The notes under the pieces: model-generated
What the model saw: the letters and a program-made list of their open reading frames with translations, nothing else
Databases searched by the model: none
Told to the model about the DNA's origin: nothing
Shown: positions 11,701-60,531 of the stretch, in pieces
How positions within the stretch are numbered: the stretch's first letter is position 1
Layout of the letters: every line of letters begins with the position of its first letter
Origin: Epiperipatus broadwayi
Lineage: Eukaryota; Animalia; Onychophora
NCBI GenBank assembly: GCA_028023455.1
Contig: JAQFVV010000005.1
Coordinates: 8,866,001 to 8,930,000 of the forward strand
Reading direction: 5' to 3'
Length of the DNA: 64,000 bases
Program-made: the position numbers and the translations under genes

Positions 11701-12946
11701 ATTTCAAATAAAGCAAATAATTATGTAATATACATTTTAATATCTGCATTAACAGCAGTAGTATTCTATAATATAACTCCAGAAGTATCTATGTAAATGT
11801 AAACAGTGAAAGATTATTCAGATAGTAGTGTAATCTGGATTCTCAGATTTTCCAGCTATTAATGTGAGATAATCCAGAACATTGAATTACACAAATAGCA
11901 GATTCTTTGACTTCTATTATACTATACATGTTTTTGATTTTATAATATTAATATTTTAATGATTTGAATCTAAGTGATCTGCTTCTATAAATCTTTCAAT
12001 AAGCCATTTATTAAAATTTATAATTAACATATAATTATGCAATAGTTTATAATGAAGCTTTTGGTTGTTAATAAAAATAATGATGGCTGATTGTTGGATA
12101 TGTGCAGTTCATTGTTCTTTGAATCTAATATTTACTTATGCTTATGTATAAGTTTTTTTATTTAAAGTTATATTGAAACTTTTATTGTTGTTGAGACAAA
12201 TAGATAAATTCAAATAAATAATTAAAAAATTAAGAAGTTTTTTTTTTAGAAAAAATAGTGTTTAATTATTGTTATTATTATTATTATTAATTTTTTGGCA
12301 TTTATGGCATGTATTTTTTTTCTTTAGATTAGTGGTAAATGTAAATTTGGATATATTGTAGTCTGTCTGGAAGCAATACCTAAGTTACCACATGCCATGG
12401 AGCAATATATGTTTTCATACACCTGGAAGTGATTGGAACTGTATTCAAATTTATTTTAAATCCACTTTAAATTATCCTGGATGAATGAATAATGTCTATA
12501 AAGCCATCTCTTGCTATCAAGTTTATACCTTCTGGGAATTGTATCCATAAATATTTACTTTAAGTATGTGATCCTGGTTTTATTATAAGTTAGAAAAAAT
12601 ACTACTACTACTTATAGTGAATGTGGCTTCTATTTTTAGTTTTAAATTCATATAAATAAAAAAAATGAAAACTCATATTTGACTGAGTTTCTGTACCATT
12701 TGATTATAAAAAGATACTTAGAAATAGTCAACTATTAGTTGTAAAGAGTACAGTAGAAAACATTAATGGATGGAAAGTTTAATAGGTCAACATTACTTAA
12801 GAACATTCACATTAATAAATTAAACATTTCTATCTATCTATGATAGAAAATTTATGGAAAACAAAATTAGCTTTTTTGAATGTGACTGATGCTGTAATAT
12901 CAAAAACTAGACACAAAGTGCAAATAGCGTATTGTTATAGGAAAAA

Positions 12947-14425
12947 ATGAACTTTATTGGAATACAAGAAAAAAATCAGATCATAGTAAAACCATTTCAA
13001 TGCAGAGTGTGTGGCTACCAAACTACTACCAAAGGTAATTTCAAAATGCATTTAAAATCTCACCCAGGAGAAAAGCCTTTCTATTGTCATTTGTGTGATT
13101 ACATGACTATTATAAAAAGTAGACTAAAACACCATGAATTAATTCATACAAAAGAAAAACCTTTACACTGCAATTTGTGTGATTACAAGACTGCTTTCAA
13201 AAATAGGTTGAAGCATCATGAATTAATTCATACAGAAGAAAAGCCTTTCCATTGCAATTTATGTGATTATAAGACTGCAATAAAATGTAGCTTAAAGTTA
13301 CATGAACGATCTCATAGTGGAGAAAAACCTTTTCAATGCCCTTTGTGCGATTACAAGACAAGTAGAAAAGATACTTTAAAAATTCACGAAAAACTTCATA
13401 CAGGAGAAAAACCTTTTGAGTGCCATTTATGTGATTATCAGACTGCTGTAAAAAGTAGATTAAAAATACATGAATTAATTCATAAAGAAGAAAAGCCTTT
13501 TCAATGTAATTTATGTGATTACAAAACTGCTTTCAAAAGCAGTTTAAAAACACATGAATTAATTCATACAGAAGAAAAACCTTTTCATTGTAATTTCTGT
13601 GATTACAAAACTGCATTCAAAAATAGATTGAAGCAACATGAATTAATTCATACAGGAGAAAAACCTTTCCAGTGCAATTTATGTGATTACAAAACAGCTT
13701 TTAAAAGTTGCTTAAAATTACATGTAAGATCACATACTGGAGAAAAACCTTTCCAATGTAATGTATGCAATTATCAAACGAGTAGAAAAGATAGTTTGTT
13801 AAGTCATGAATTTACTCATACAGTTGAAAAACGTTTCAAATGCACTTTGTGTAATTACAAAAGTATTTCAAAATATAGATTCAAAATACACGAATTAACT
13901 CATGCAGATAACAGTTCTTTCCAATGCGGTTTGTGTGATTACAAAACTGCTACAAAAGCTGATTTGAAAGCACATGAAACATTCCATGTAGGGAAAAAGC
14001 CTTTTCAATGTAGTTTATGTGATTTCGGGGCTACTTCTAAAAGTAATTTAAAATTACATGTTAAATTCACTCATTCACAAAATAAATCATACCACTGCAG
14101 TTTCTGCACTTACAAGACTGCTACCAAGCGTAATCTAAAAATACATGAGCAAATTCATAAAGGAGTAAAATCCAAAAGAAATGCAAAAGATAATTTAAAA
14201 ATACAAGAAAATATTAACATAGTAACAGAGACTGTTAATATGTTTTCTTTAAAAAATTTATATATAGAACAATCTATTCTTAAACAAAAACAACTAATAA
14301 GAGAAAAAGTGTATACATGCTGTTTATGTGATTATAAAGTTATAGAAAAGAATCTTTGGGAAAGTCATGAAATAAATCATTTCACTGATTATGAAATTCT
14401 TGAGATTCTCATACAGTTGACTTGA
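12947..14425 (+). CDS. Tandem C2H2 zinc-finger protein (14 tandem fingers plus 1 isolated C-terminal finger); probably the last or main coding exon
   Basis: Uninterrupted 492-aa ORF with repeated C-x2-C-x12-H-x3-H units and TGEKPF-type linkers; candidate splice acceptor ttgttatag just upstream (~12940); ends ...HEINHFTDYEILEILIQLT*. Confidence 0.95.
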   Translation: MNFIGIQEKNQIIVKPFQCRVCGYQTTTKGNFKMHLKSHPGEKPFYCHLCDYMTIIKSRLKHHELIHTKEKPLHCNLCDYKTAFKNRLKHHELIHTEEKPFHCNLCDYKTAIKCSLKLHERSHSGEKPFQCPLCDYKTSRKDTLKIHEKLHTGEKPFECHLCDYQTAVKSRLKIHELIHKEEKPFQCNLCDYKTAFKSSLKTHELIHTEEKPFHCNFCDYKTAFKNRLKQHELIHTGEKPFQCNLCDYKTAFKSCLKLHVRSHTGEKPFQCNVCNYQTSRKDSLLSHEFTHTVEKRFKCTLCNYKSISKYRFKIHELTHADNSSFQCGLCDYKTATKADLKAHETFHVGKKPFQCSLCDFGATSKSNLKLHVKFTHSQNKSYHCSFCTYKTATKRNLKIHEQIHKGVKSKRNAKDNLKIQENINIVTETVNMFSLKNLYIEQSILKQKQLIREKVYTCCLCDYKVIEKNLWESHEINHFTDYEILEILIQLT

Positions 14426-17528: not shown

Positions 17529-18362
17529 GGTAAACACGAAGTTACCAGGTCACAACAAAATTCGAATTTTGTTTCAAATTTTTCTCACCAGAGTTTCTTG
17601 TCGAATTACTGTGCATTGTAGTTTTCGTTTACAGAAAATATAAAATTCGCAAAGCAAATTCTTATAGGTAAGATTGGAATAAAGTATTGCTGGTAGTGTG
17701 AAATTGTTATATTGTCTTGGAGCACTTTTTACAAGTTTTTCAAAGTTGTAAGATGTGGCTTTCTAAGAGTTTTTCAGTTTTCAGATGTAGTCCATAAAAT
17801 GAATCCTGTAAATGGTAATATAGTTGTAGTGCCAGAGAAGGAAGTGTTACATGCTGTTGATCCTCATGACCCTGATATCCACACACAAAATGTGGAAAGT
17901 ATGTGGATGAGAGCTAAACGCAAGCTCAAACATCAGTGTGGCACCAGCAGTACTTTATTCGAATCCTACTTACAGGAATTCGCCTTTAGGATGCTGTCTT
18001 TGCGAATTTTATCATTATAAGCGAAAACTACAATGGACAGTAATTATGAATAAACTTATTAATTATGAATGAACTTATTAAACTACAATGGACAGTAATT
18101 ATGAAAAACTTATTAGAGAATATGCGTAAAATGTTGACTGCGTAATATCTGGGCCGTTTATTTTGTTATTATTTTAATAAATATTTTTTATCAGATATTT
18201 TTTATAATATAATTGTTATTAATTATTTTTCATAATATAATTTTATGCTGCCGTGTATTTGATATTTCACAACAAATTTTTAAATAATTCGACAAGAAAT
18301 ACTCTGGTGAAAAAAATTTAAACTACAAAATTTTGTCATGACCTGGTAAATTCATGTTTACT
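17529..18362 (+). mobile_element. Merlin (IS1016/ISXO2-like) non-autonomous deletion derivative
   Basis: ~80-bp imperfect TIRs (GGTAAACACGAAGTTACCAGGTC... at 17529; ...GACCTGGTAAATTCATGTTTACT at 18362); 8-bp TSD CATTTTTG/CGTTTTTG; internal transposase C-terminus. Confidence 0.9.
17712..18020 (+). pseudogene. Merlin/ISXO2-like transposase C-terminal fragment
   Basis: VDPHDPDIHTQNVESMWMRAKRKL..CG....FESYLQEFAFR matches the HTQxIExxW...YLxEFxxR pattern. Confidence 0.85.
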
Positions 18363-18599
18363 CGTTTTTGAGGGTTGTCACGATAACAGTTGAGCATGCG
18401 ATAATTTATCATTCAGATTGGCGAATTGTGTCGGTTTGTTAATATTTTCAGCTGATTTATTTGATTCAATTTTATCATCTAATATCTTTGTGTTATTGCT
18501 AGCATCATACCAGTTGTTAGGTTGATTTTCGTTAATCAAAGTTTAATATCTTTGTTGTGGCTATCGGTTTTTCTTTTTTTTTGCACCTAAAGAGGATGT

Positions 18600-19600
18600 T
18601 CCAATCAGTGCCTTGACAAGCAAAGAAAAGAAAGGGTTTAGTAAAGAAATTAACAGTGTTTTCATATAATAAATATGATGTAGCTCGAATTGTATGGAAG
18701 GGAGTTGTAGTAGCAGAGTTAACATATGGTAATGATGCATTGTGTTAGTAAAAGGGTATTAGATTACTTAGAGAAAGTACAAAGGGATGTAGGAAGACAT
18801 GCATTAGATGCAGAGGTATGGACAGCAAAGGAGGCAATTCAAGGAGAAATGGGATGGTCAAGTTTTTATATGAGAGATGCAAAAAGTAAAATGAAAATGT
18901 TTGGTAGGTTGCAGTTTATGGATGATAAAAGAATAGCCAAAATAGTATTTAATTGGGTTATGAGTAAAGGGCAGGCAACAAGATGGGTGAGAAAGGTAAT
19001 GCGGTATGCAAAGGATTTGGATAAAGAATTTATATCAGTATACTTGTATAAAAGGTGGGATGATTGTGTTAGGAGGATTGTTGAGTGTTATAGTGGTAAG
19101 GAATGGGATAAAAGAATAGATGCATTAATAAAGAATAGGGAGTTGGAGAGATGGAGAACTAGTATGGAGAGTAAAAAGAGTTTAAATATATATAGAAGTA
19201 AATGGAACATTGGGTGCGAGTTAATTTATGATAATAGTAAGGAAAGTAGCTTATTGTTTAAGGCTCAAATGGGATCTTTAGCAACAAGAGAATATACATG
19301 TAAATGGAAAAATATGGGTGATTTAGTTTGCAAATTGTGTAAGGAAGATATAGAAAATATTAGGCATCTGTTGATTGAATGTAAATGCTTGAAAGCAGAA
19401 AGGGTACAAATAAAGAAGTTATGGGAGAGTAAATATGAACAAAGTGATTATACAGAAAGTGGGTTATTGGTATTTATGCTGGGTTTCGGAAAAGATAAGA
19501 GGGATTTAGATATAAAGGCCATAGAGTTGACAAAGATTATGTTGTGGAAATGGGATGGAGCAGATTATGGGAAAGTTTAGGGTGGGGAATGGAAGGGGAA
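18600..19600 (+). mobile_element. 5'-truncated non-LTR retrotransposon 3' fragment (post-RT domain with C-terminal CCHC zinc-binding motif)
   Basis: 284-aa ORF 18726-19580 with EAIQGEMGW and CKLCKEDIENIRHLLIEC (C-x2-C-x8-H-x4-C); no RT core present. Confidence 0.8.
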
Positions 19601-37485: not shown

Positions 37486-39300
37486 TAAAATTATTGTTCT
37501 TACCCCGAAATCTCGATTAAGACTTGGTTTTATACTCTTAATCAAGATTGCTTAATTTTTCTATCCCTACTATTATTTGTGTAATTAATCATTTTTATAC
37601 AATCTTTTTCAAACCTATGACCTGTTTTTAATGAATGCAAATAAACAGGTGATCTCTTATCATATTTATGCTGAATTAATCTGGTATAAATTGAGTTCTT
37701 TGTTTCTCCCACATAATTAGTTTTTATATTTTTACTTTTGCATGATTTGCATTCAATTTTATATACCCCATTTATATTTTTTTCTACTTTTCTTACATAC
37801 TTATTATCTAATATATTAAGTATATTCTTCCTTCTTTTATTCACTATCTTAAACTTTATAACATTATTAAACTTTTTGTTAATTCTAATAATTATTCTAT
37901 TCATACCTTTTACAATACTGTTATTATAAGTTTTAATACCTATATATTTATTTTTATCTATTTTATTTTTTCTACTTACTATCCCATTGTTTGTATTAAA
38001 TTTGTCTTTCAATTTTCTTATATTTTCTTTTATAACTTTTTCTGGATATTCATTATCCCTAAACTCTTTAATTATTAATTCTATCTGTCTTTTATAATCT
38101 TCCTTATCTGAGCAATAATTCCTAGCTCTATATATTCTTGAATTTACACTACTTATTTTATATTTAACATCTATATTTGAATGCCAATTATTTATATTGC
38201 TATCTACATTACTTTTTTTATATACAGATGTCTCTATCTTGCATTTACCATTTTTATATGATTTTTCTAACAAAATATCCAAATATGATAATTTATTATC
38301 ATTTTCTTTTTCTACTATAAATTTTATATTTTTATCCAATCTATTAATCTCTTCAAGATACATATCTATTTGCCTTTGACTCTTGTTGAAAATCAATAAA
38401 TAATCATCAACATATCTTTTCATAAAAATTGGACCATTAGTATTATTAATCATTAAATCTTCCATATTTTCCATATATATATTACTAAGTACCCCACTCA
38501 ATGCCCCTCCTATTAGTAATCCTTTATTTTGCTTATAATATTCTCCATTAAATTCAAATGTAATATCCTTACAACAAATTCTCATTATTTCTCTCAATTT
38601 TTCTATTGGTATTTTAATTTCTTTATGTTCATCTTTTCTATATCTTTTTATTGCTAACTCTATTGCTTCTTCTACATTTATATTTGTGTACATTGATATT
38701 ACATCTATTTTTACCATAGTTAACTTATAATTATTATATTCATTTATCTTATCTTTCATATCATTTATTAACTCTTTATTATTTTTAATATAAAAACTAC
38801 TTTTATCATTAATATATTTCTTAAGAATATTACTTGATAACCATTTAGATATTCTATCAAAATATGAATTTGTACCATTTATGACTGGTCTTAAAGGCAC
38901 CCCTTCTTTAAATATTTTTGGTGCTCCATAAATTCTTGCCATAGCACAATCTTTATTACCCAAAAATGCAAATATTTTTCTATCCATTAACCCATTATTA
39001 TATAATCCTTTTACTAACTCATAAATCTTCCCATTTTTTAATTTTGTATCATCTTTCTTTATTTTAATAAAATACTTCTCTTCCAACAATTTATTCATTT
39101 TACCAATGTATTCTTCTTTATTCATTAATACCAATTTATTACCTTTATCTGACTTTATAAACACTATTTCTTTTTCATATTTATCCCTTATTTCTTTAAC
39201 CTCTTTTATTTTAATTACATTATTTAAATTATTTATCCCCTTATTCAACTTTTTATGTTTATTTTCAATATTTACTTTTTTTATTTTATATATCATATAA
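37486..39300 (-). mobile_element. Penelope-like element (RT plus GIY-YIG endonuclease), 5'-truncated, with one C-terminal frameshift
   Basis: 584-aa ORF 37542-39296: SDKGN, YGAPKIFKEGVPLRPVI, IDVISMYTNI, GLLIGGALS, RYVDD, YLDI, GVYKIEC..C...YVGET....R..QH; after the shift near 37550 it reads AILIKSIKPSLNRDFG. Confidence 0.93.
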
Positions 39301-45117: not shown

Positions 45118-47270
45118 ATGGACTCTGTAATAAAGCCTATACTAAGGCCTAAACGCTCTAATGGGAGGAAAAATATATATACTAACCTTAAAACCTCTCC
45201 ATGAGTCCCAAAGTTTGGATTACAACAATAAACCCTCCAAAGAACCAAAGAATAAATCTACAACGGTAGAAAGCATTTCAAATAATCAAAATCAATTTCT
45301 TCTTCGACTACTAACAACCTGATAATAAAATCTATGCTAAAATCGACACATTGTCACGTGAAAGGGGAAAATAATTCGAAATTATCTAGTGATTTCCAAA
45401 TTGTAAATGCAAAGATTCCCTAATGAACCTAAAAATAGCGGTGAAAATGTTCGAAATGATCATACCGTTAAAAAAAGTATAATTCCGCTCATAAACTCGC
45501 GAAACAACGGGAAAACTTTGCAACAGGGGAAAAATGATGATTCCCCATTTACAGCCTCGAACAAAAAAATGAATCACTTAGAGAATACCAAAACTTTCAA
45601 ACACCATCAAAAACTAATCTATCTCCACTAAATAATCCAGAACTGGGAAAACAGATTAACAACAATAATTTATATAACAACACAAATCTAAATCTCATAA
45701 AATCTCCAAAACAATTAAAGGAAAATAAAAATTCCAAAACTACAATAATTAAACCAAATCAGAAATCGACCTTAAACCATAATGATATGCACTCTCCCAT
45801 TCCAAAACAATCTTCACTAAGTCACCCAGAGTTTGACAAATTCAATATCACAGGCCCTGAATACAGGGATTCAAACCAACTACCTCACAACTCTGAGCAT
45901 AATAAAACCACAAGCCCAATGATGAATGAAATGACATATGCAAACAAGGTCAGAGCTAACATAATGATAAATACACATCATCAAACATCACAACCTGATA
46001 AATACATGGAAGCAATTCGACTTTTACAAGAAATAGAAACAGAACAGTCTACATCAAACTACTCTAATCCTCAAACAACATCTACAGATAATCCTACTTG
46101 TGATATTCAGAACCATGAAATAATAAATGAACAGTTTAACCAAACCATACCATTGCCACTCCACAAATCTCTACTCAACTATTATAATGAGTGTTCTCTC
46201 ATACTTTCCACTACAGATAACTGTTTAAATCTATACACATTCCCTACATCATCACTATATGAACTATGTAAAGCACATGGCTGGTGGAAATCGATCCATA
46301 AGATCCTCTTTCATCCAAATGAAAGATATCTTATCATCCAGTTCACAAACCAACAAGTTAAAGCTGCCTTTAGAAATAGTCATAAACTCCTAAACAACAA
46401 ATTTCTTGTCTACATTGACTTCAACCGCCCAGTTGTTTTAACAGGGTGAATTCAAAAATGTACCATGGACTTTGAAAAGGCAGACCTTCAGCGCCACTTC
46501 AAAGACTATGGCACCATTACCAAATTTCAATACCTAGTAGCAGACAACGATGATCCCACAGTATACATCAACACTGCACAATTTCAGCTTGTTCTTAAAA
46601 AAGGAATTCCATCTCAATCAGTCCCATCTCTAATTCAACATGGCGAATCTTCACTCATCATCATCTTTCGTGGCCTTCCACCCCAATGCTTTCATTGCAG
46701 GCAGAGAGGCCATCTAAAAAAAGATTGTCAAGAGAGAAAATGCATAATTTGTGGAGAGATTCGGTACAAATTCCACAAATGTGATAGCGATCAAGAAAAT
46801 CATCTAACAAATACATACCCAAGTCTCAAGCAACAATATATCACTAGCAATACCACAGATCACACTACATCATCATCAAAAATTCCTAATGATAAAACTT
46901 CCTTGGAAACAGAATAATTTCAACTCACTCCTGAACAGCTGCATACCAATGACAATTGCGTATCATCATCAGATACAGCAACAATCAGCCAAACAGACAT
47001 GGACACCGATGCTGAATAAAGCGACACTACAATGGCCAGCAACAGAATTCCATGTAAAAGAAAACAAAAAAAAACAATAGCTCTGAACAATCACAAGAAA
47101 GTAGCAATAGCAATGAATGTGACAATCTTCGAGATGCAACAAAGACCAATATTCCCCCACCAAATAGACCTTGTGAAAAAAAACGAAGAGACCGTTCTCC
47201 AAAAGTCACAAGTTCATATAACCTCACAAATGAAACAAAAACAATAGACCAAGATAACAACATGCAACTG
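45118..47270 (+). pseudogene. LINE ORF1 (Asn-rich N-terminus, RRM-like middle, zinc knuckles), interrupted
   Basis: Fragments 45787-46449 and 46465-46917 are in the same frame, separated by one TGA; CFHCRQRGHLKKDC knuckle; the second knuckle has Y in place of H; further frameshifts. The ATG at 45118 is inferred. Confidence 0.75.
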
Positions 47271-47532
47271 ATTGACCCTTTGTCTCAAAATAAAGTAGCC
47301 TCATGTCAACATGAAAATGACAATGAACGCTTACTGATAGACTTATCTCCATCATTGTGGCCTATTCCTGAACCTATTTCACCAGACCTCAACTTATCTA
47401 AGAACCTAATACAATCTGAACCTTATCATCACCCCACCAATTTGATGCTGGAACAGAATATTATGGTCTTAGAAACTGGATCACATTCCAATCAGGCAAA
47501 CTCTCCCACATGAGAGAGCGGTTTCACTATCA

Positions 47533-50500
47533 ATGATGACTTTCAACATAACATCGATTAACATCAGAGGCATGAACTCCCTTGGCAGAATCCAAGCATT
47601 ATCATTCTGGCTTAAGCATAATACACCTGATGTTCTTTGCCTCTTCACACACTATCTGACCAAAACATCATACAGAGAATACAAAAATTTGGATACTTCC
47701 ATTATTCCTTCTCCTCCTCTGCATCTGGTGGAGTAGCAATTCTTTTTAATAAAAAATCTAAAATAACCTTTTTCAAAATAATTCATATAGACTCTAACTG
47801 CCTCATAGCCATTATACAGGTAAATGGATGGACACTTAACATAATAAATGTTTACATGACCAAAGCATCAGATATAATCTATAGAATCATCCACACTATC
47901 AACGCGGTCTTAAGAACTAACCCTTTTCCTGCATTGATGTTGGGTGACTTTAATCATACATACGATTCTTTTGAAAGGAGTCACCTAAAATCACTGAGCA
48001 ACACCTTTAAGAACTAACCCTTTTCCTGCATTGATGTTGGGTGACTTTAATCATACATACGATTCTTTTGAAAGGAGTCACCTAAAATCACTGAGCAACA
48101 CCTTTACAAGTGGAAGACAGCTTTTTGATGTGTCTGCCTTCTCATTCTATTCATCACGGTTTAAGTCCCTCATTGATCTTTTATACTTCTCTCCTTCACT
48201 TGCTCCCTTCATTGAAGCTAACCTGTGGCCTGTTGTCTTTACGGACCACATGGCACTAGAGGTCCTTATCAGAATTGTGGATAACACATTCATATGGCAA
48301 CATTCCACGAACAATGAGGATCCTCACAAAGGAATCTGCCACTATACAACTCATCTCTGAGATTTACATATCATTCAACTCTGCTAATATAAACACACTT
48401 TCACCATGTGATAAATGGAAAAACTTCATAAATATTCTACAATCACATATTCATAACATAATAAAGGTCCCCTCAAATTACTAAGTCAATTGGACAAGAT
48501 AGCCGACACACTTAAACATTTGCCCATACAAAGGCAAAATATCCAAGAAATTACTCGCCTTAAACTACAATACAAAGCTACCCAACAATCCCTGGCTGAA
48601 TACCTATCAATTAAACGAGCGTGCAGTTACTTAGCATATCAACACTGCTGGACTCGAGGTTACATCAGATGGGCCCTAGGATCCAACCAACAAAACAAGG
48701 CACCCTCATCGATCAAGATACACAGTAAACAATATATTGGCCTCTCCATGCTTTCCAAAATAAGAGACTTTTACAAAAGAAAATTACAACATATTGGTGT
48801 CACTAACATCCGTAGAGTTTTTGTTACTAACAACCCTATAGAACATAACATCACAGATGGTGATATTCTTGACAAACTGCAATCACTCCCAGAAAGTGTC
48901 CATCCTGGCATGCATGGAATTTCCAGATTTCTACTTTTACACCTAAGAGCTTTTATTATCCCAGTAATCCACGGAATGATAGACCTCATCGCCACTAGAA
49001 GTCATCACCTAATAAACCTATGTCCCATCTCCATGGTACCCTTTTTAAAGAAGCGAGATGCACAACCAGATCTCAATAACCTGCGTCCTATCTCGATGAT
49101 TCCTCTATTGACAAAGATCATTGAGATTATCATTAAAGACAAGATTCAATATAACATAATTAAACAACTTTCGCGCTATCAATTTGCAAAAAAAGGCACT
49201 TCAACATCTGACGCTGTCAGCCGCTTCAGACTTCTGGTCGATCATGTGCGGAGACAAAGGAAGTCCCGGCCCATTGTAGTCCAACTTGATATAGCTGGGG
49301 CATTCGACTCTGTGAGAATTGATGTTCTTCTCAGTGTTCTGGAACAGCTAAATGTACCACCCATATACATTCAAATGATTGAGAATCTTCTTTACAATCG
49401 GGAAGTGTTCTTGTCCCTAGATGGTCGCATTGCCCCAGGTTTTATGCCCTACATCTCCATCCCCCAAGGTTCTCCCCTGAGTGCACTTCTCTTTGCTGCC
49501 TATATCAATCCAATGCTGTTGAACATCAAGGCCACGTTTTCTGGTATCGCTGTTCCGTTACTTAATGAGAACATCAATCACATCTCCTATATGGATGATG
49601 TAGTTGTGTTTCTTTCATCCCATGATGAACTGGGTAAGCTAAAACAACTTCTTGATCACCATGCCAAATTATCTGGTTTCCTTGTCAACCCAAAAAAATC
49701 AACTATTTGGTCAATTCTTACTGGCCAGAAGATCTCTGGTGGATTTGAAGCAGCACCACAGAAATTTCTAGGATTTCACCTATCAAAAACACCCACGGTG
49801 ATGCGTAAAGAGATACAGGACTCATTATTAGAGAAAATTGAAACCACAATTGCATCTTTGTCAAAAATATACCTTTCCCTATTTGGGAAAGTAGCCCTTT
49901 TAAATGCTCTCATTCTTCCAAAAATAATATACTATTTGGCAGGGTTCATCCCCACCAAGGTATTCATCAACAAAGTAGAAACCGCCTGTAGAAAACTGTG
50001 TTGGGCGGGCCGATCACCTGTAATTAGCTTGAGAATCCTCCAAAAGCCCAAAACTTTAAATGGTCTTTCACTACACTTGCTAACTATATTCAACTTACAA
50101 CGCATCCATAATGTACTCTACAACATCTTCAAGGAAAATGAACGTGCTCAATGCCCACTTCCGGAAAAGGACATTCAACCTACTGATCGGCCATCCCCCA
50201 GAGGACGTGCCTTGCTCCTTCAACAGCAGATCAACTTTATCTTTGATAACTTCAAACCAACATCAACCCTATTTCAAAGAAAACTTGCATATTGGGAAGT
50301 GTTTGATCTCCTTGACCATCAAAAACAGAGGATCCCCAGCTGCCTTTCAATCGACATCCCTCGAATGATAAGGATGACCAAGCTCTGGAAGTTGCCACCA
50401 AAAATCGTGGACTTCCTATTGAAATCGAACCTGCATGCCCTCCCAACAAATGCCTTCCTCCACTATAAAAGGGGACAAGATATTGACTCTAATTGCACAT

Positions 50501-50775
50501 TGTATCAAAGACAGGAAGAGACTACCGATCACTTCCTCTTCGAATGCACAACTTTGAACAATTTAAGAACTCATTTTCAACAAAACATGACAAGAAATCA
50601 AATTGAAATGAACCTCAAGACAGCAATTGAAAAGGGCATATTCTCTGAGATCCGGCTTTCGGCCATAATTAACTTTTCCATCTGGGCATTGCGCTGTAAG
50701 CTGGTGTTCCAGGCTGAGACCTTGAATAATATATTTCACAGTATTTTGCCAAATACTAAACAAGGAAAGGGATAG
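47533..50775 (+). pseudogene. LINE ORF2 (APE endonuclease, RT, CCHC); endonuclease half frameshifted, RT half open for 761 aa
   Basis: SINIRGMNS, GGVAIL, LGDFN, SLIDL, TDH; LRPISM, LDIAGAFDSV, IPQGSPLS, YMDD, KFLG, KVALLNALILPKIIY; E.TTDHFLFEC. Confidence 0.92.
47910..48106 (+). repeat. Perfect 97-bp tandem duplication in the endonuclease domain
   Basis: 47910-48006 is repeated at 48007-48103, with TTA microhomology; both copies encode LMLGDFNHTYDSFERSHLKSLSNTF. Confidence 0.95.
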
Positions 50776-56644: not shown

Positions 56645-58340
56645 TTGGACATAAATCTCATCTGAAAACTCCCATTTAAAAACAAATCAAGTTACTCATG
56701 AACAGCAACCATTGTGTAAATTGGTTATATATATCTACATTCTATTACTTATTAAGTTTAGTTGGTGATTTTAAATAGAAACATCAGCTCTCTCAAGATG
56801 TTTTCCAAAAAGGGTGTCATTGACAAAACCTTAATTAATTATTTTTAAATGTATAATTAATTTTGATTTTCCAGACAGGTATATCATAAACCTAATGTGT
56901 GGATGAATGGATATTTTAATTAGTTAATAGAAACTTGTTTAAATTTACTATGAATCTCATCTGAAAATCGAATTTTGTGTGAAGTCACTGTGATTTTATT
57001 TTTGCAGTAATTAAAGCAGCAGCATAAAAGACCACATTGTGTAATTTAAATCACAAAGTTCTTGGAATCTCATTAGGAAGAAAACTTCAGTGGATGCTAG
57101 TAATAAATTATGTGATTTTTTAAAATTAAAAATATATTCATCTGAATTTTAAATTTGGATTCATGTTTAAAATAAATAATAAATGCTGAGTAAAAATTGT
57201 ATTTTTAAAAAAATATTATGATGATATATATGTATTTAATAATATTTGAAGAAAACTGCCATATCACTAATTATTTAATATGATGTCAAAAATTGGAATT
57301 TAAGAATATATTAAAAATTTATTACTGCTTTAAGCAGATGATAATTAGCATGTAAGTTGTTCCTCCATTCATTGTGATTGGTATAAAAGATTTCTTACAA
57401 TGTATATATGTAGAAATATTAATTGTTGTGTAGTAATTTATAGTGATTAAAATGGTGAAAATTTTTTTAGATTTTCCTATCATCAACAAACAGTATTATT
57501 ATTTAATTGTGTGATTTATTTTGAAATTGAAGTAAAAATGGCTTAACATTTGTATATTAAATATTGGCAACTATTATTTTACAAGAAATTGTTTTAAGAT
57601 GGTGTCTTGATATTAATTTTTAATCACTATGTGATGTGTTTCTAAAATTTTCAAGTTAAAGAAAGCAGTCCTAATATATATATTTAAAGGATAACTCAGC
57701 TTAGAAAATTTCCTGTATTTGCAAAAATCCTTAAAAGATTCAAATAGCAATACTTGTATTAAGTGTGATTTATATATTTGCAAGGAAAGAAAAATATTCT
57801 TTTAATGTAGAAATATTTATAAAAAAGTCAATGGCTATTTATGAAGTTAATTCTATTTATAAATATTATACAGGGTGCAAAAGACTTTCTGATTTAGTAT
57901 TTTAAGTTGCTGTGAAGAGTATAATAATACTTAAAGATATACAGAGAAAAATATTAATTTGACTATTTCTATTCATTAGTGTTACATTCAAAATCTTCAA
58001 AGGAACTTACAAGTGATTTCAATATATTCCAAATAAATACACAGAACAAGTCATAAAGAATGAAGCATTTTTTATTCTAAGGATCATCTGATTATAAAGT
58101 TGCTCAAAGGCAGCTTTTATCATTACGAATCTTCTGTACAAATTGGTTCAAAAGTATGTCTAAAAGCTCTTGTAGAAAATATTTTTTGAAAACCACTTGC
58201 AAACGCAATTACAAAAGATATTTACAAATGAATGAAAGAAATGATTAAAAAACTAAGAAATGATCTTTATGTTATTGGAAATTTAAAAATTCATAAATTT
58301 TTTTTATCATTACAAAACTGCTAGTGAATGTTTTAATAAA
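56645..58340 (+). pseudogene. Heavily decayed zinc-finger remnants upstream of ZF locus 2
   Basis: SHLKTNQVTHEQQPLC (~56665-56720), HCDFIF (~56985), DYKVAQ (~58090), HYKTAS (~58308). Confidence 0.45.
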
Positions 58341-58342
58341 CC

Positions 58343-60531
58343 ATGAAAGATCTCATTCATGAACAAAAACCATTTCAGTGTGATATCTGTAAATATAAAG
58401 CTTCTCAAAAAACTCAATTAACACTGCATAAAAAAACTCACACTAGAGAAAAATCTTTTAATTGTAGTTACTGTGGTTACAAAACACATATTATATGTAA
58501 TTTAAAAGTACATCAAAGAGTTCATATTGGAGAAAAACTTTTTAGTTGTTGCTTCTGTGATTACAGAACTCCTTTCAAAAGTAATTTAAAAGCGCATGAA
58601 AGAACTCATACTGGAGAGAAACCGTATATCTGCAGCTTCTGTGATTATAAGACATCTCAAAAACGAACTGTACAATTACATGAAAGAACTCATACAAAAG
58701 ATAAACCATTTCAGTGTAATTTATGTAATTACACTGCTTCTAACAAAGCCAGTTTAAAACAGCATGAAACAAACCATAGTGGAGAAAAGCCTTTTAATTG
58801 TAGCTTCTGTGCATACAAGACTTGTAGAAAAAGTAATTTAAACCTGCTTGAAAGAACTCACACAAAAGAAAAACCTTTTAATTGTAATTTGTGTGACTAT
58901 AAGACTTCCAGGAAAAGTAGTTTAAAACTACACGAAAGAATACACACAGGAGAAAAACCATTTCAATGTACCCTATGCAACTACACTACTTCTCATAAAG
59001 CTAGTTTAAAACAGCATGAAACAAGTCATACTGGAAAAAAAGCTCTATAAATGTAATCTTTGTGATTACAGTACTGCTAGGAAAGCTCATTTAAAACAAC
59101 ATGAAAGGACTCATACTGGTGAAAAGCATTTGAATAATAGCTTTTATGAATATAGTACTTATCAAAAAGCTAACTTAAGAATGCATGAAAGAACTCATCC
59201 AAAAGAAAAACGTTTTAAATGTACTTTATGCAATTACACTGCTTCCTTCAAAGTTAGTTTAAAACAGCATGAAATAAAATGTGGAGAAAAGCCTTGTAAA
59301 TGTAGTGTCTGTGGCTATACTTTTGCTCAAAAAGGTCATTTGAAGCGACATGAAAGAACTCATAATAGCGAAAAGCTATTTAATTGTGGCTTCTGTGAAT
59401 ACAAAACCTCTGAAAAAACGTATTTAAAAGTACACGAAAGAATTCATACTGGAGAAAAACTTTTATTGTAGTGTATGCAATTATAAGACTTCGCAAAAAC
59501 TTAATTTAAAAGTATTGGAAGAATTCATACAAAAGAAAAACCTTTTCATTGCACTTTATGTAATTATACTGCTTCTCACAAAGCTGGGTTAAAACAGCAT
59601 GAGACAAATCATAGTGGAGAAAAACCCTACAATTGTAATTTATGTGATTACAGCACTTCTTTGAAAAACAATTTATTATTGCATAAAAGAACTCATACTG
59701 GTGAGAAATCCTCCATTGTAGATACTGTGATTATAAGAGTTCTCAAAAACCTAATTTAAAATTGCATGAAAGAACTCATAGCAAAGAAAAATCTTTTAAG
59801 TGTATTATATGTAATTATGCTACTTCTTACAAGGTTAGTTTAAAACAGCATGAATCAAGTCATAGTGGAGAAAAACCTTTTAATTGTAGCTTCTGTAACT
59901 ACAAGACTTGTCGTAAAAGTAATATAAAACAACATGAAAGAATTCACATGAAAGAAAAACCTTTTAATTGTTATTTATATGATTATAAAACTTCTAGGAA
60001 AAGTCTATTAGAACTACACAAAAGATCACATACAGGAGAAAAACCATTTCAGTGTATTTCCTGTAGTTACAAGACCTCTAAAAAGCAAATTTAAGAATTC
60101 ACAAAAGAACTCATACTAGACAGAAACCATTTCATTGTAGTGTCTGTGATTATAAAACTTCTATAAAAGTTTGTTTAAAATTCCATGAAAGAATTCATAT
60201 CAGAGAAAACTTAAATTTAAGTAGATACAGGTTTTCTGGAAAATGTACTGAAATAGAACTTGAGAATAATTTGTGTCATTACAAAACTGATAGAGTTAAG
60301 GAAGCTGCTTCTCAAAGTAAACTGACATATAATCAAAATATTCACACAAAACATACTTTACTATTGAATCACAAGCAGATAAAAAACATTAAAAATGACT
60401 TTCATAATAGTGTTGTATTTAAGTGTCATTTAAGTGATTATGAAGATGCAGACAAAAATGTTTTAGATAATCATGAAACAAATCATTTTACTGATTCTAA
60501 CACTATTGAGATTCTTATTCAATTGACTTGA
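58343..60531 (+). pseudogene. Tandem C2H2 zinc-finger paralogue (~22 tandem fingers plus a degenerate terminal finger) with about 5 frameshifts
   Basis: Finger-coding frames join across shifts at ~59040, ~59462, ~59518, ~59711 and ~60088; some fingers have lost Cys or His; ends ...HETNHFTDSNTIEILIQLT*. Confidence 0.88.

Follow-up and report, generated by a model that had tools for sequence, protein, structure and literature searches.

Which function, if any, keeps the last residues of two zinc-finger loci identical is the question raised by the 64-kb stretch of onychophoran DNA analysed here as a whole (the window). Large animal zinc-finger families repeatedly combine a fast-changing DNA-reading array with one constant docking piece, and to our knowledge only a few such pieces have been described (KRAB, SCAN, BTB, ZAD, and FiNZ), all of them N-terminal. 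A constant piece at the C-terminus, here a lone acidic finger followed by a peptide of 14 residues, would, if true, be a new solution, and so short a peptide would provide a handle, by deletion or as bait, for asking what role the gene plays in a little-known animal lineage.

The window has a G+C content of 28%, is rich in transposon remains, and contains two zinc-finger loci and no further ones. The first, locus 1, is organized as follows:

12947–14425, forward strand: locus 1, an intact ORF of 492 codons coding for a poly-C2H2 zinc-finger protein of 15 fingers with every zinc ligand kept
13001–14158, forward strand: tandem array of 14 C2H2 fingers, CDYKT-type, with mostly TGEKPF-type linkers
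14159–14308, forward strand: spacer of 50 residues, basic, rich in K, N, and Q, net charge +6
14318–14380, forward strand: isolated (detached) C2H2 finger, acidic, C-x2-C-x12-H-x3-H, complete
14381–14422, forward strand: tail of 14 residues, FTDYEILEILIQLT, followed by the TGA stop codon at 14423–14425

The locus 1 product is a poly-C2H2 protein of the Krueppel type, with tandem C-x2-C-x12-H-x3-H units joined by TGEKP-type linkers; its fingers match the C2H2 regular expression perfectly (15/15), and Pfam returns zf-H2C2_2 with E=2.8e-85 and zf-C2H2 with E=1.8e-25. The array has a strict period of 84 nt and a net charge of +28. Neither a KRAB nor a ZAD domain was found by Pfam in the ORF, and no domain in its C-terminal 91 amino acids. 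The HExNH residues, which the original prediction counted as part of the tail, are the second His pair of the complete isolated finger and belong to that finger. Several array fingers are of recurring types (13169/13505/13589, 13253/13673, and 13337/13757); since the types recur, the sequence suggests that the array grew by internal duplication of several fingers at a time. Tandem Repeats Finder also reports a period of 168 nt in the array.

An acceptor-like ttatag lies at 12935–12940, just 5' of the locus 1 ATG (12947), and includes an in-frame stop. The gene may be spliced or trans-spliced, with this ORF as its final exon, preceded by an upstream exon or a spliced leader, and as upstream exons are possible, an N-terminal effector domain is possible too. 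Poly(A) signals were dropped as evidence, AATAAA/ATTAAA occurring here 5 times per kb. In the single public sequencing run found to share words with locus 1 (X1; small, contig-only, and possibly of RNA) one contig of 166 nt matches exactly within the locus 1 array, and none of its contigs, which are mostly from paralogues, covers the locus 1 tail. More than 100 contigs of this run match the finger array (13000–14340) at 85–95% identity and then diverge into unlike sequence, so the organism sequenced there carries many related finger genes.

Several mobile elements were recognized in the window. Fragments at 17712–19580 on the forward strand, 3–5 kb downstream of locus 1, comprise a piece of an IS1595/ISXO2-like DDE transposase (17712–18020) and the C-terminus of a LINE reverse transcriptase with zf-RVT (18726–19580). 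A LINE-type retrotransposon on the forward strand (45787–50775), with a G+C content of 0.37–0.40, above that of its surroundings, comprises an ORF with a CCHC knuckle (46465–46917), endonuclease fragments, apparently duplicated (47637–48360), and a reverse transcriptase of 761 amino acids with a zf-RVT end (48490–50775). On the reverse strand, an ORF of 584 amino acids (37542–39296) has a reverse-transcriptase-like YVDD and a GIY-YIG-like C-terminal stretch; by eye it looks Penelope-like, but Pfam has no match for it at E <=0.01.

The second zinc-finger locus, locus 2, ends in the same manner as locus 1:

58340–60531, forward strand: locus 2, a decayed paralogue with ca. 23 finger units, a spacer of 72 residues, a counterpart of the isolated finger, and a tail
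60424–60486, forward strand: equivalent of the isolated finger, with Ser in place of the second Cys
60487–60528, forward strand: tail, FTDSNTIEILIQLT, followed by the TGA stop codon at 60529–60531

At least five frame changes are needed to read locus 2 through (near 59040, 59465, 59508, 59705, and 60085), and zinc ligands are lost in six units, the isolated finger included: the units at 58799 and 59469 have Leu for His, that at 59136 lacks both Cys, that at 59220 has a shortened His pair, and that at 59969 has Tyr for Cys. Some of the frameshifts fall in A-runs and may be assembly errors, an explanation that does not hold for the lost ligands. Locus 2 is a pseudogene, a dead member of the putative family. 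Thus, of the two zinc-finger paralogues originally reported, locus 1 stands as an intact gene and locus 2 does not, which leaves a single living tail-bearing gene in the window, while the module formed by the isolated finger and the tail is present in the window in two copies. Locus 2 also contains an internal duplication of 251 nt (59437–59888), corresponding to about three fingers and 79% identical.

The last seven codons read EILIQLT in both loci (14402–14425 and 60508–60531, with the stop codon) and differ by three changes, ctc/ctt, ata/att, and cag/caa, all of them silent, exactly as had been claimed; the FTD residues at the start of the tail are likewise the same in both loci and differ, again as claimed, by one silent change (ttc/ttt). 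By contrast, the four codons between them (YEIL vs. SNTI) have accumulated five replacement changes. The constrained parts of the tail are thus FTD and EILIQLT, with four intervening residues free to vary, so that the constrained part is very short. In the last seven codons there are no replacement changes in 16.3 sites and three silent ones in 4.7 sites (Fisher p=0.0075), and with FTD added the Fisher p is 0.0005.

The ungapped C-terminal block of 47 codons, in which 48 of the 141 nucleotides differ between the loci, was used for a neutral simulation, with 48 differences scattered randomly across the block and windows of seven codons scored when their residues were identical and three or more of their changes silent. 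Such a window arose somewhere along the block in 0.4% of trials (p ~0.004) and at its very end in 0.03%. Comparison with the fingers, which had been put forward as a check on the original prediction, agrees with this: the core sequences of all locus 1/locus 2 finger pairs have a median pN of 0.31 and a median pS of 0.60, while the last seven codons have a pN of 0 and the pS of the tail, 0.64, equals the silent divergence of the fingers. The isolated finger has a pN of 0.26 between the loci against 0 for the last seven codons, and the spacer is weakly kept (pN ~0.66 for its last 10 codons). Among the best-partnered finger units, the only other windows of seven codons with identical residues are the CxLCDYK knuckle, one SLKLHER helix stretch, and the HTGEKPF-type linkers. 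By these measures the tail is kept as tightly as the finger parts that hold the fold, and the isolated finger, the four middle residues, and the spacer are not.

With silent sites near saturation (pS ~0.6), the two loci are, judging by their codons, old paralogues. Since silent sites are near saturation, no replacement is found, and the neutral p is ~0.004, the comparison supports maintenance of the tail peptide by purifying selection at the protein level, as the original prediction held, and speaks against the tail being a remnant of a recent duplication. Nucleotide similarity between the loci is lost 2 nt or less from the stop codon, the flanks have nothing in common, and no conserved exon common to both loci was found upstream of the arrays within 6 kb; the conserved block is therefore coding. 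A conserved 3' UTR element, an RNA structure, and the end of a mobile unit were ruled out, as the similarity ends at the stop codon and there are no common flanks. With ~6% of the ligand codons of locus 2 damaged, the survival of seven undamaged tail codons after the death of the gene is unremarkable, and for this reason the identity of the tails records selection from the time when locus 2 was alive.

Relatives of the tail were sought in several collections. In a word-indexed library of 5.8 billion proteins the tail region inside the full-length query had no match. When the same library was queried with the whole protein, the tail was in none of the best 120 matches, the best named ones coming from vertebrates, Lepidoptera, ticks, and Hydra at 33–54% identity; a query of 155 amino acids containing the tail, meant to reach fragments, also found none there. 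When 1.84 billion representatives were searched exhaustively with a profile, each of the 90 matches ran through generic fingers and did not extend to the tail, and an exact look-up of the 492-amino-acid product found it absent from the records. The DNA pattern coding for the tail had 34 matches in metagenome contigs, all attributable to chance and without finger context, and viral contigs had no match. Among PDB sequences the matches were confined to the generic finger, with E of at least 0.08 (ZFAT, Aiolos, ZFP64, CTCF, and Ikaros), and the ESM Atlas weak generic C2H2 and hunchback-named clusters under the recognition threshold. The blanks in the libraries mostly reflect the absence of this organism's genes from them and are no proof that the module is rare.

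What the selected peptide does has to be judged together with the finger that precedes it. The isolated finger and the tail, 38 amino acids in all, carry a net charge of -5 in locus 1 and -6 in locus 2, and acidic isolated fingers that stand apart from a basic array typically bind protein and not DNA. Ikaros and Hunchback dimerize through C-terminal fingers distinct from those that bind DNA (PMC5393059). The C-terminal module, presumably lineage-specific, is probably a protein-docking surface; that it also marks a lineage-specific family of poly-zinc-finger proteins, of which locus 1 is a living member, and provides that family with a protein-binding surface, is moderately likely. The 14 basic tandem fingers would presumably read DNA and be followed by a basic, flexible spacer and then by the acidic module, composed of the isolated C2H2 finger and F-T-D-x4-E-I-L-I-Q-L-T-COOH, which would bind a protein, be it by docking a cofactor or by self-association. 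The module would in this way give the DNA-reading array its downstream effect, as the N-terminal add-ons KRAB, ZAD, and FiNZ do, and on the most economical reading the tail would be the most constrained contact of a 38-residue docking module. With two copies, one of them dead, the module is a lead and not a discovery.

Two AlphaFold2 runs draw the tail as a short helix with low confidence (mean pLDDT 69.8 and 48.0) and were given no weight, and analysis of the hydrophobic moment does not separate helix from strand; periodicity of the strand type exceeds that of shuffled sequences only in the last nine residues of locus 2 (p=0.019) and not in locus 1. The loose core of a SUMO-interacting motif (SIM), the PhixxPhiPhi pattern, and an LxLxL-like pattern fit both loci equally well, while NES, LxxLL, and CoRNR patterns fit the tail of neither.

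The alternative that fares best, although still unlikely, is a purely structural one, in which the tail is a short helix or strand packing back on the isolated finger and stabilizing it, with no partner of its own. Such a role agrees with the position of the tail directly after the last zinc-binding His, with the resemblance, on our own reading, of T-D-Y-E to a helix N-cap, and with the retention of FTD and the hydrophobic end around a variable middle. However, the finger to be stabilized is far less conserved than the last seven codons, the reverse of what would be expected, and the models contain no confident packing of the tail.

Decidedly unlikely is the wider proposal in which a sizeable and so far undescribed family of clustered poly-zinc-finger genes in this lineage shares the module as a constant effector end, the module recruiting a silencing cofactor, SUMO or another, to transposons, as an independent C-terminal counterpart of KRAB or FiNZ.

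The tail as a SIM, as originally suggested, has a low probability. The core ILIQ or LIQL would pair with SUMO as an added beta-strand, the D/E residues ahead of it would lie on the basic patch of SUMO, and SUMO-dependent silencing factors would thereby be brought to the sites bound by the array. We take the resemblance of the last five residues, LIQLT, to VIDLT of the PIAS motif as a point for this reading. By a recent definition, a SIM comprises four core residues, three or more of them hydrophobic, and acidic or phosphorylatable residues that stand before the core when the SIM is anti-parallel and after it when it is parallel; the motif is described as loose (PMC12751080). Cores of the psi-psi-x-psi form, with at least three of V/I/L in four residues, occur in both tails (ILEI, LEIL, and LIQL in locus 1; IEIL and LIQL in locus 2), and acidic residues lie ahead of the core, in the order described for anti-parallel SIMs (PMC12751080), with D, E, and E within six residues upstream of it in locus 1. 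A core with at least two flanking acidic residues occurs in just 2% of random 14-residue ends and in 2% of the 203 zinc-finger C-termini fetched. The bare core, however, is also carried by 31% of random ends of 14 residues, taken from six-frame segments of the AT-rich window, and by 5% of the fetched zinc-finger C-termini, and locus 2 falls short of two acidic residues within five. The acidic/serine run that follows the PIAS core is impossible here, the stop codon coming directly after Thr in both loci. Moreover, the tail matches patterns of other motifs equally well, both low-confidence models have it as a helix and not as a strand, and the strand periodicity is confined to locus 2. On the sequence, a SIM is not favoured over other short-motif readings, and the story of a SIM in a KRAB analogue is speculation. 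The corepressor peptide and the degron that were originally offered as alternatives, and a role of the genes in silencing transposons, find no support here either.

One of those other readings, that the tail is an acidic-hydrophobic motif for activation or coactivator docking, of the PhixxPhiPhi type, with the proteins being activators and not repressors, is improbable as well. ILEIL, LEILI, and IEILI match PhixxPhiPhi, the module is strongly acidic and contains F, Y, and W, and a short tail helix is drawn in both low-confidence models, but the pattern is as loose as that of the SIM, and the hydrophobic residues of the tail are mostly Ile and Leu and not aromatic, while known activation motifs favour aromatic residues. 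The view that the tail has no function, its identity being due to chance or to a patch of gene conversion between the loci, might appeal to the reading of only two sequences, one of them dead, and to a stretch of codons picked after the data had been seen, but it is very improbable, as the neutral scan speaks against chance and gene conversion would also have erased the silent differences, yet the silent divergence of the tail equals that of the fingers.

The acidic docking module, the reading preferred here, can be compared with several known systems. The likeness to the SIM of PIAS proteins (V-D-V-I-D-L-T followed by an acidic/serine run) consists in a hydrophobic core with acidic residues nearby, but it goes no further than I-x-L-T: the acidic residues come before the core here and after it in PIAS, and the protein ends here at Thr. 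ZAD genes of insects are a lineage-specific, expanded poly-zinc-finger family with a constant protein-interaction part, as the present genes would be; however, ZAD is an N-terminal, zinc-binding dimerization domain of ca. 80 residues and was not found in the ORF by Pfam. With the KRAB zinc-finger proteins of tetrapods the locus would share the combination of a variable DNA-reading array with a constant protein-docking part, and it shares clustered, duplicating genes with dead copies among them, but Pfam finds no KRAB in the ORF, what is constant sits at the opposite end and is far smaller, and the partners of KRAB include TRIM28.

In Ikaros and Hunchback, C2H2 fingers at the C-terminus stand apart from the DNA-binding array and serve in protein–protein contact (PMC5393059). 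The array fingers of locus 1 are of the same CxxC-[DN]-Y type, and the nearest PDB sequences include Aiolos, Ikaros, CTCF, ZFAT, and ZFP64. In Ikaros and Hunchback, however, there are two C-terminal fingers without such a tail, while here there is one isolated finger; the profile matches to Aiolos and Ikaros in PDB have E of at least 0.14 and concern the generic finger only.

The closest described parallel in design is FiNZ of cyprinid fish, an acidic N-terminal motif of 28 residues without known homology, which marks ca. 700 zinc-finger genes tied to transposon repression (PMC10547256). The FiNZ motif is N-terminal and has an exon of its own, whereas the add-on described here is C-terminal, lies in the same ORF as the array, and comes with an isolated finger; a link to transposon repression, as in FiNZ, is speculative here. 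Both systems nevertheless join a poly-C2H2 array to a very short acidic add-on, in the present case a presumably lineage-specific one, that resembles no known domain (PMC10547256), and in both the paralogues are clustered in transposon-rich settings.
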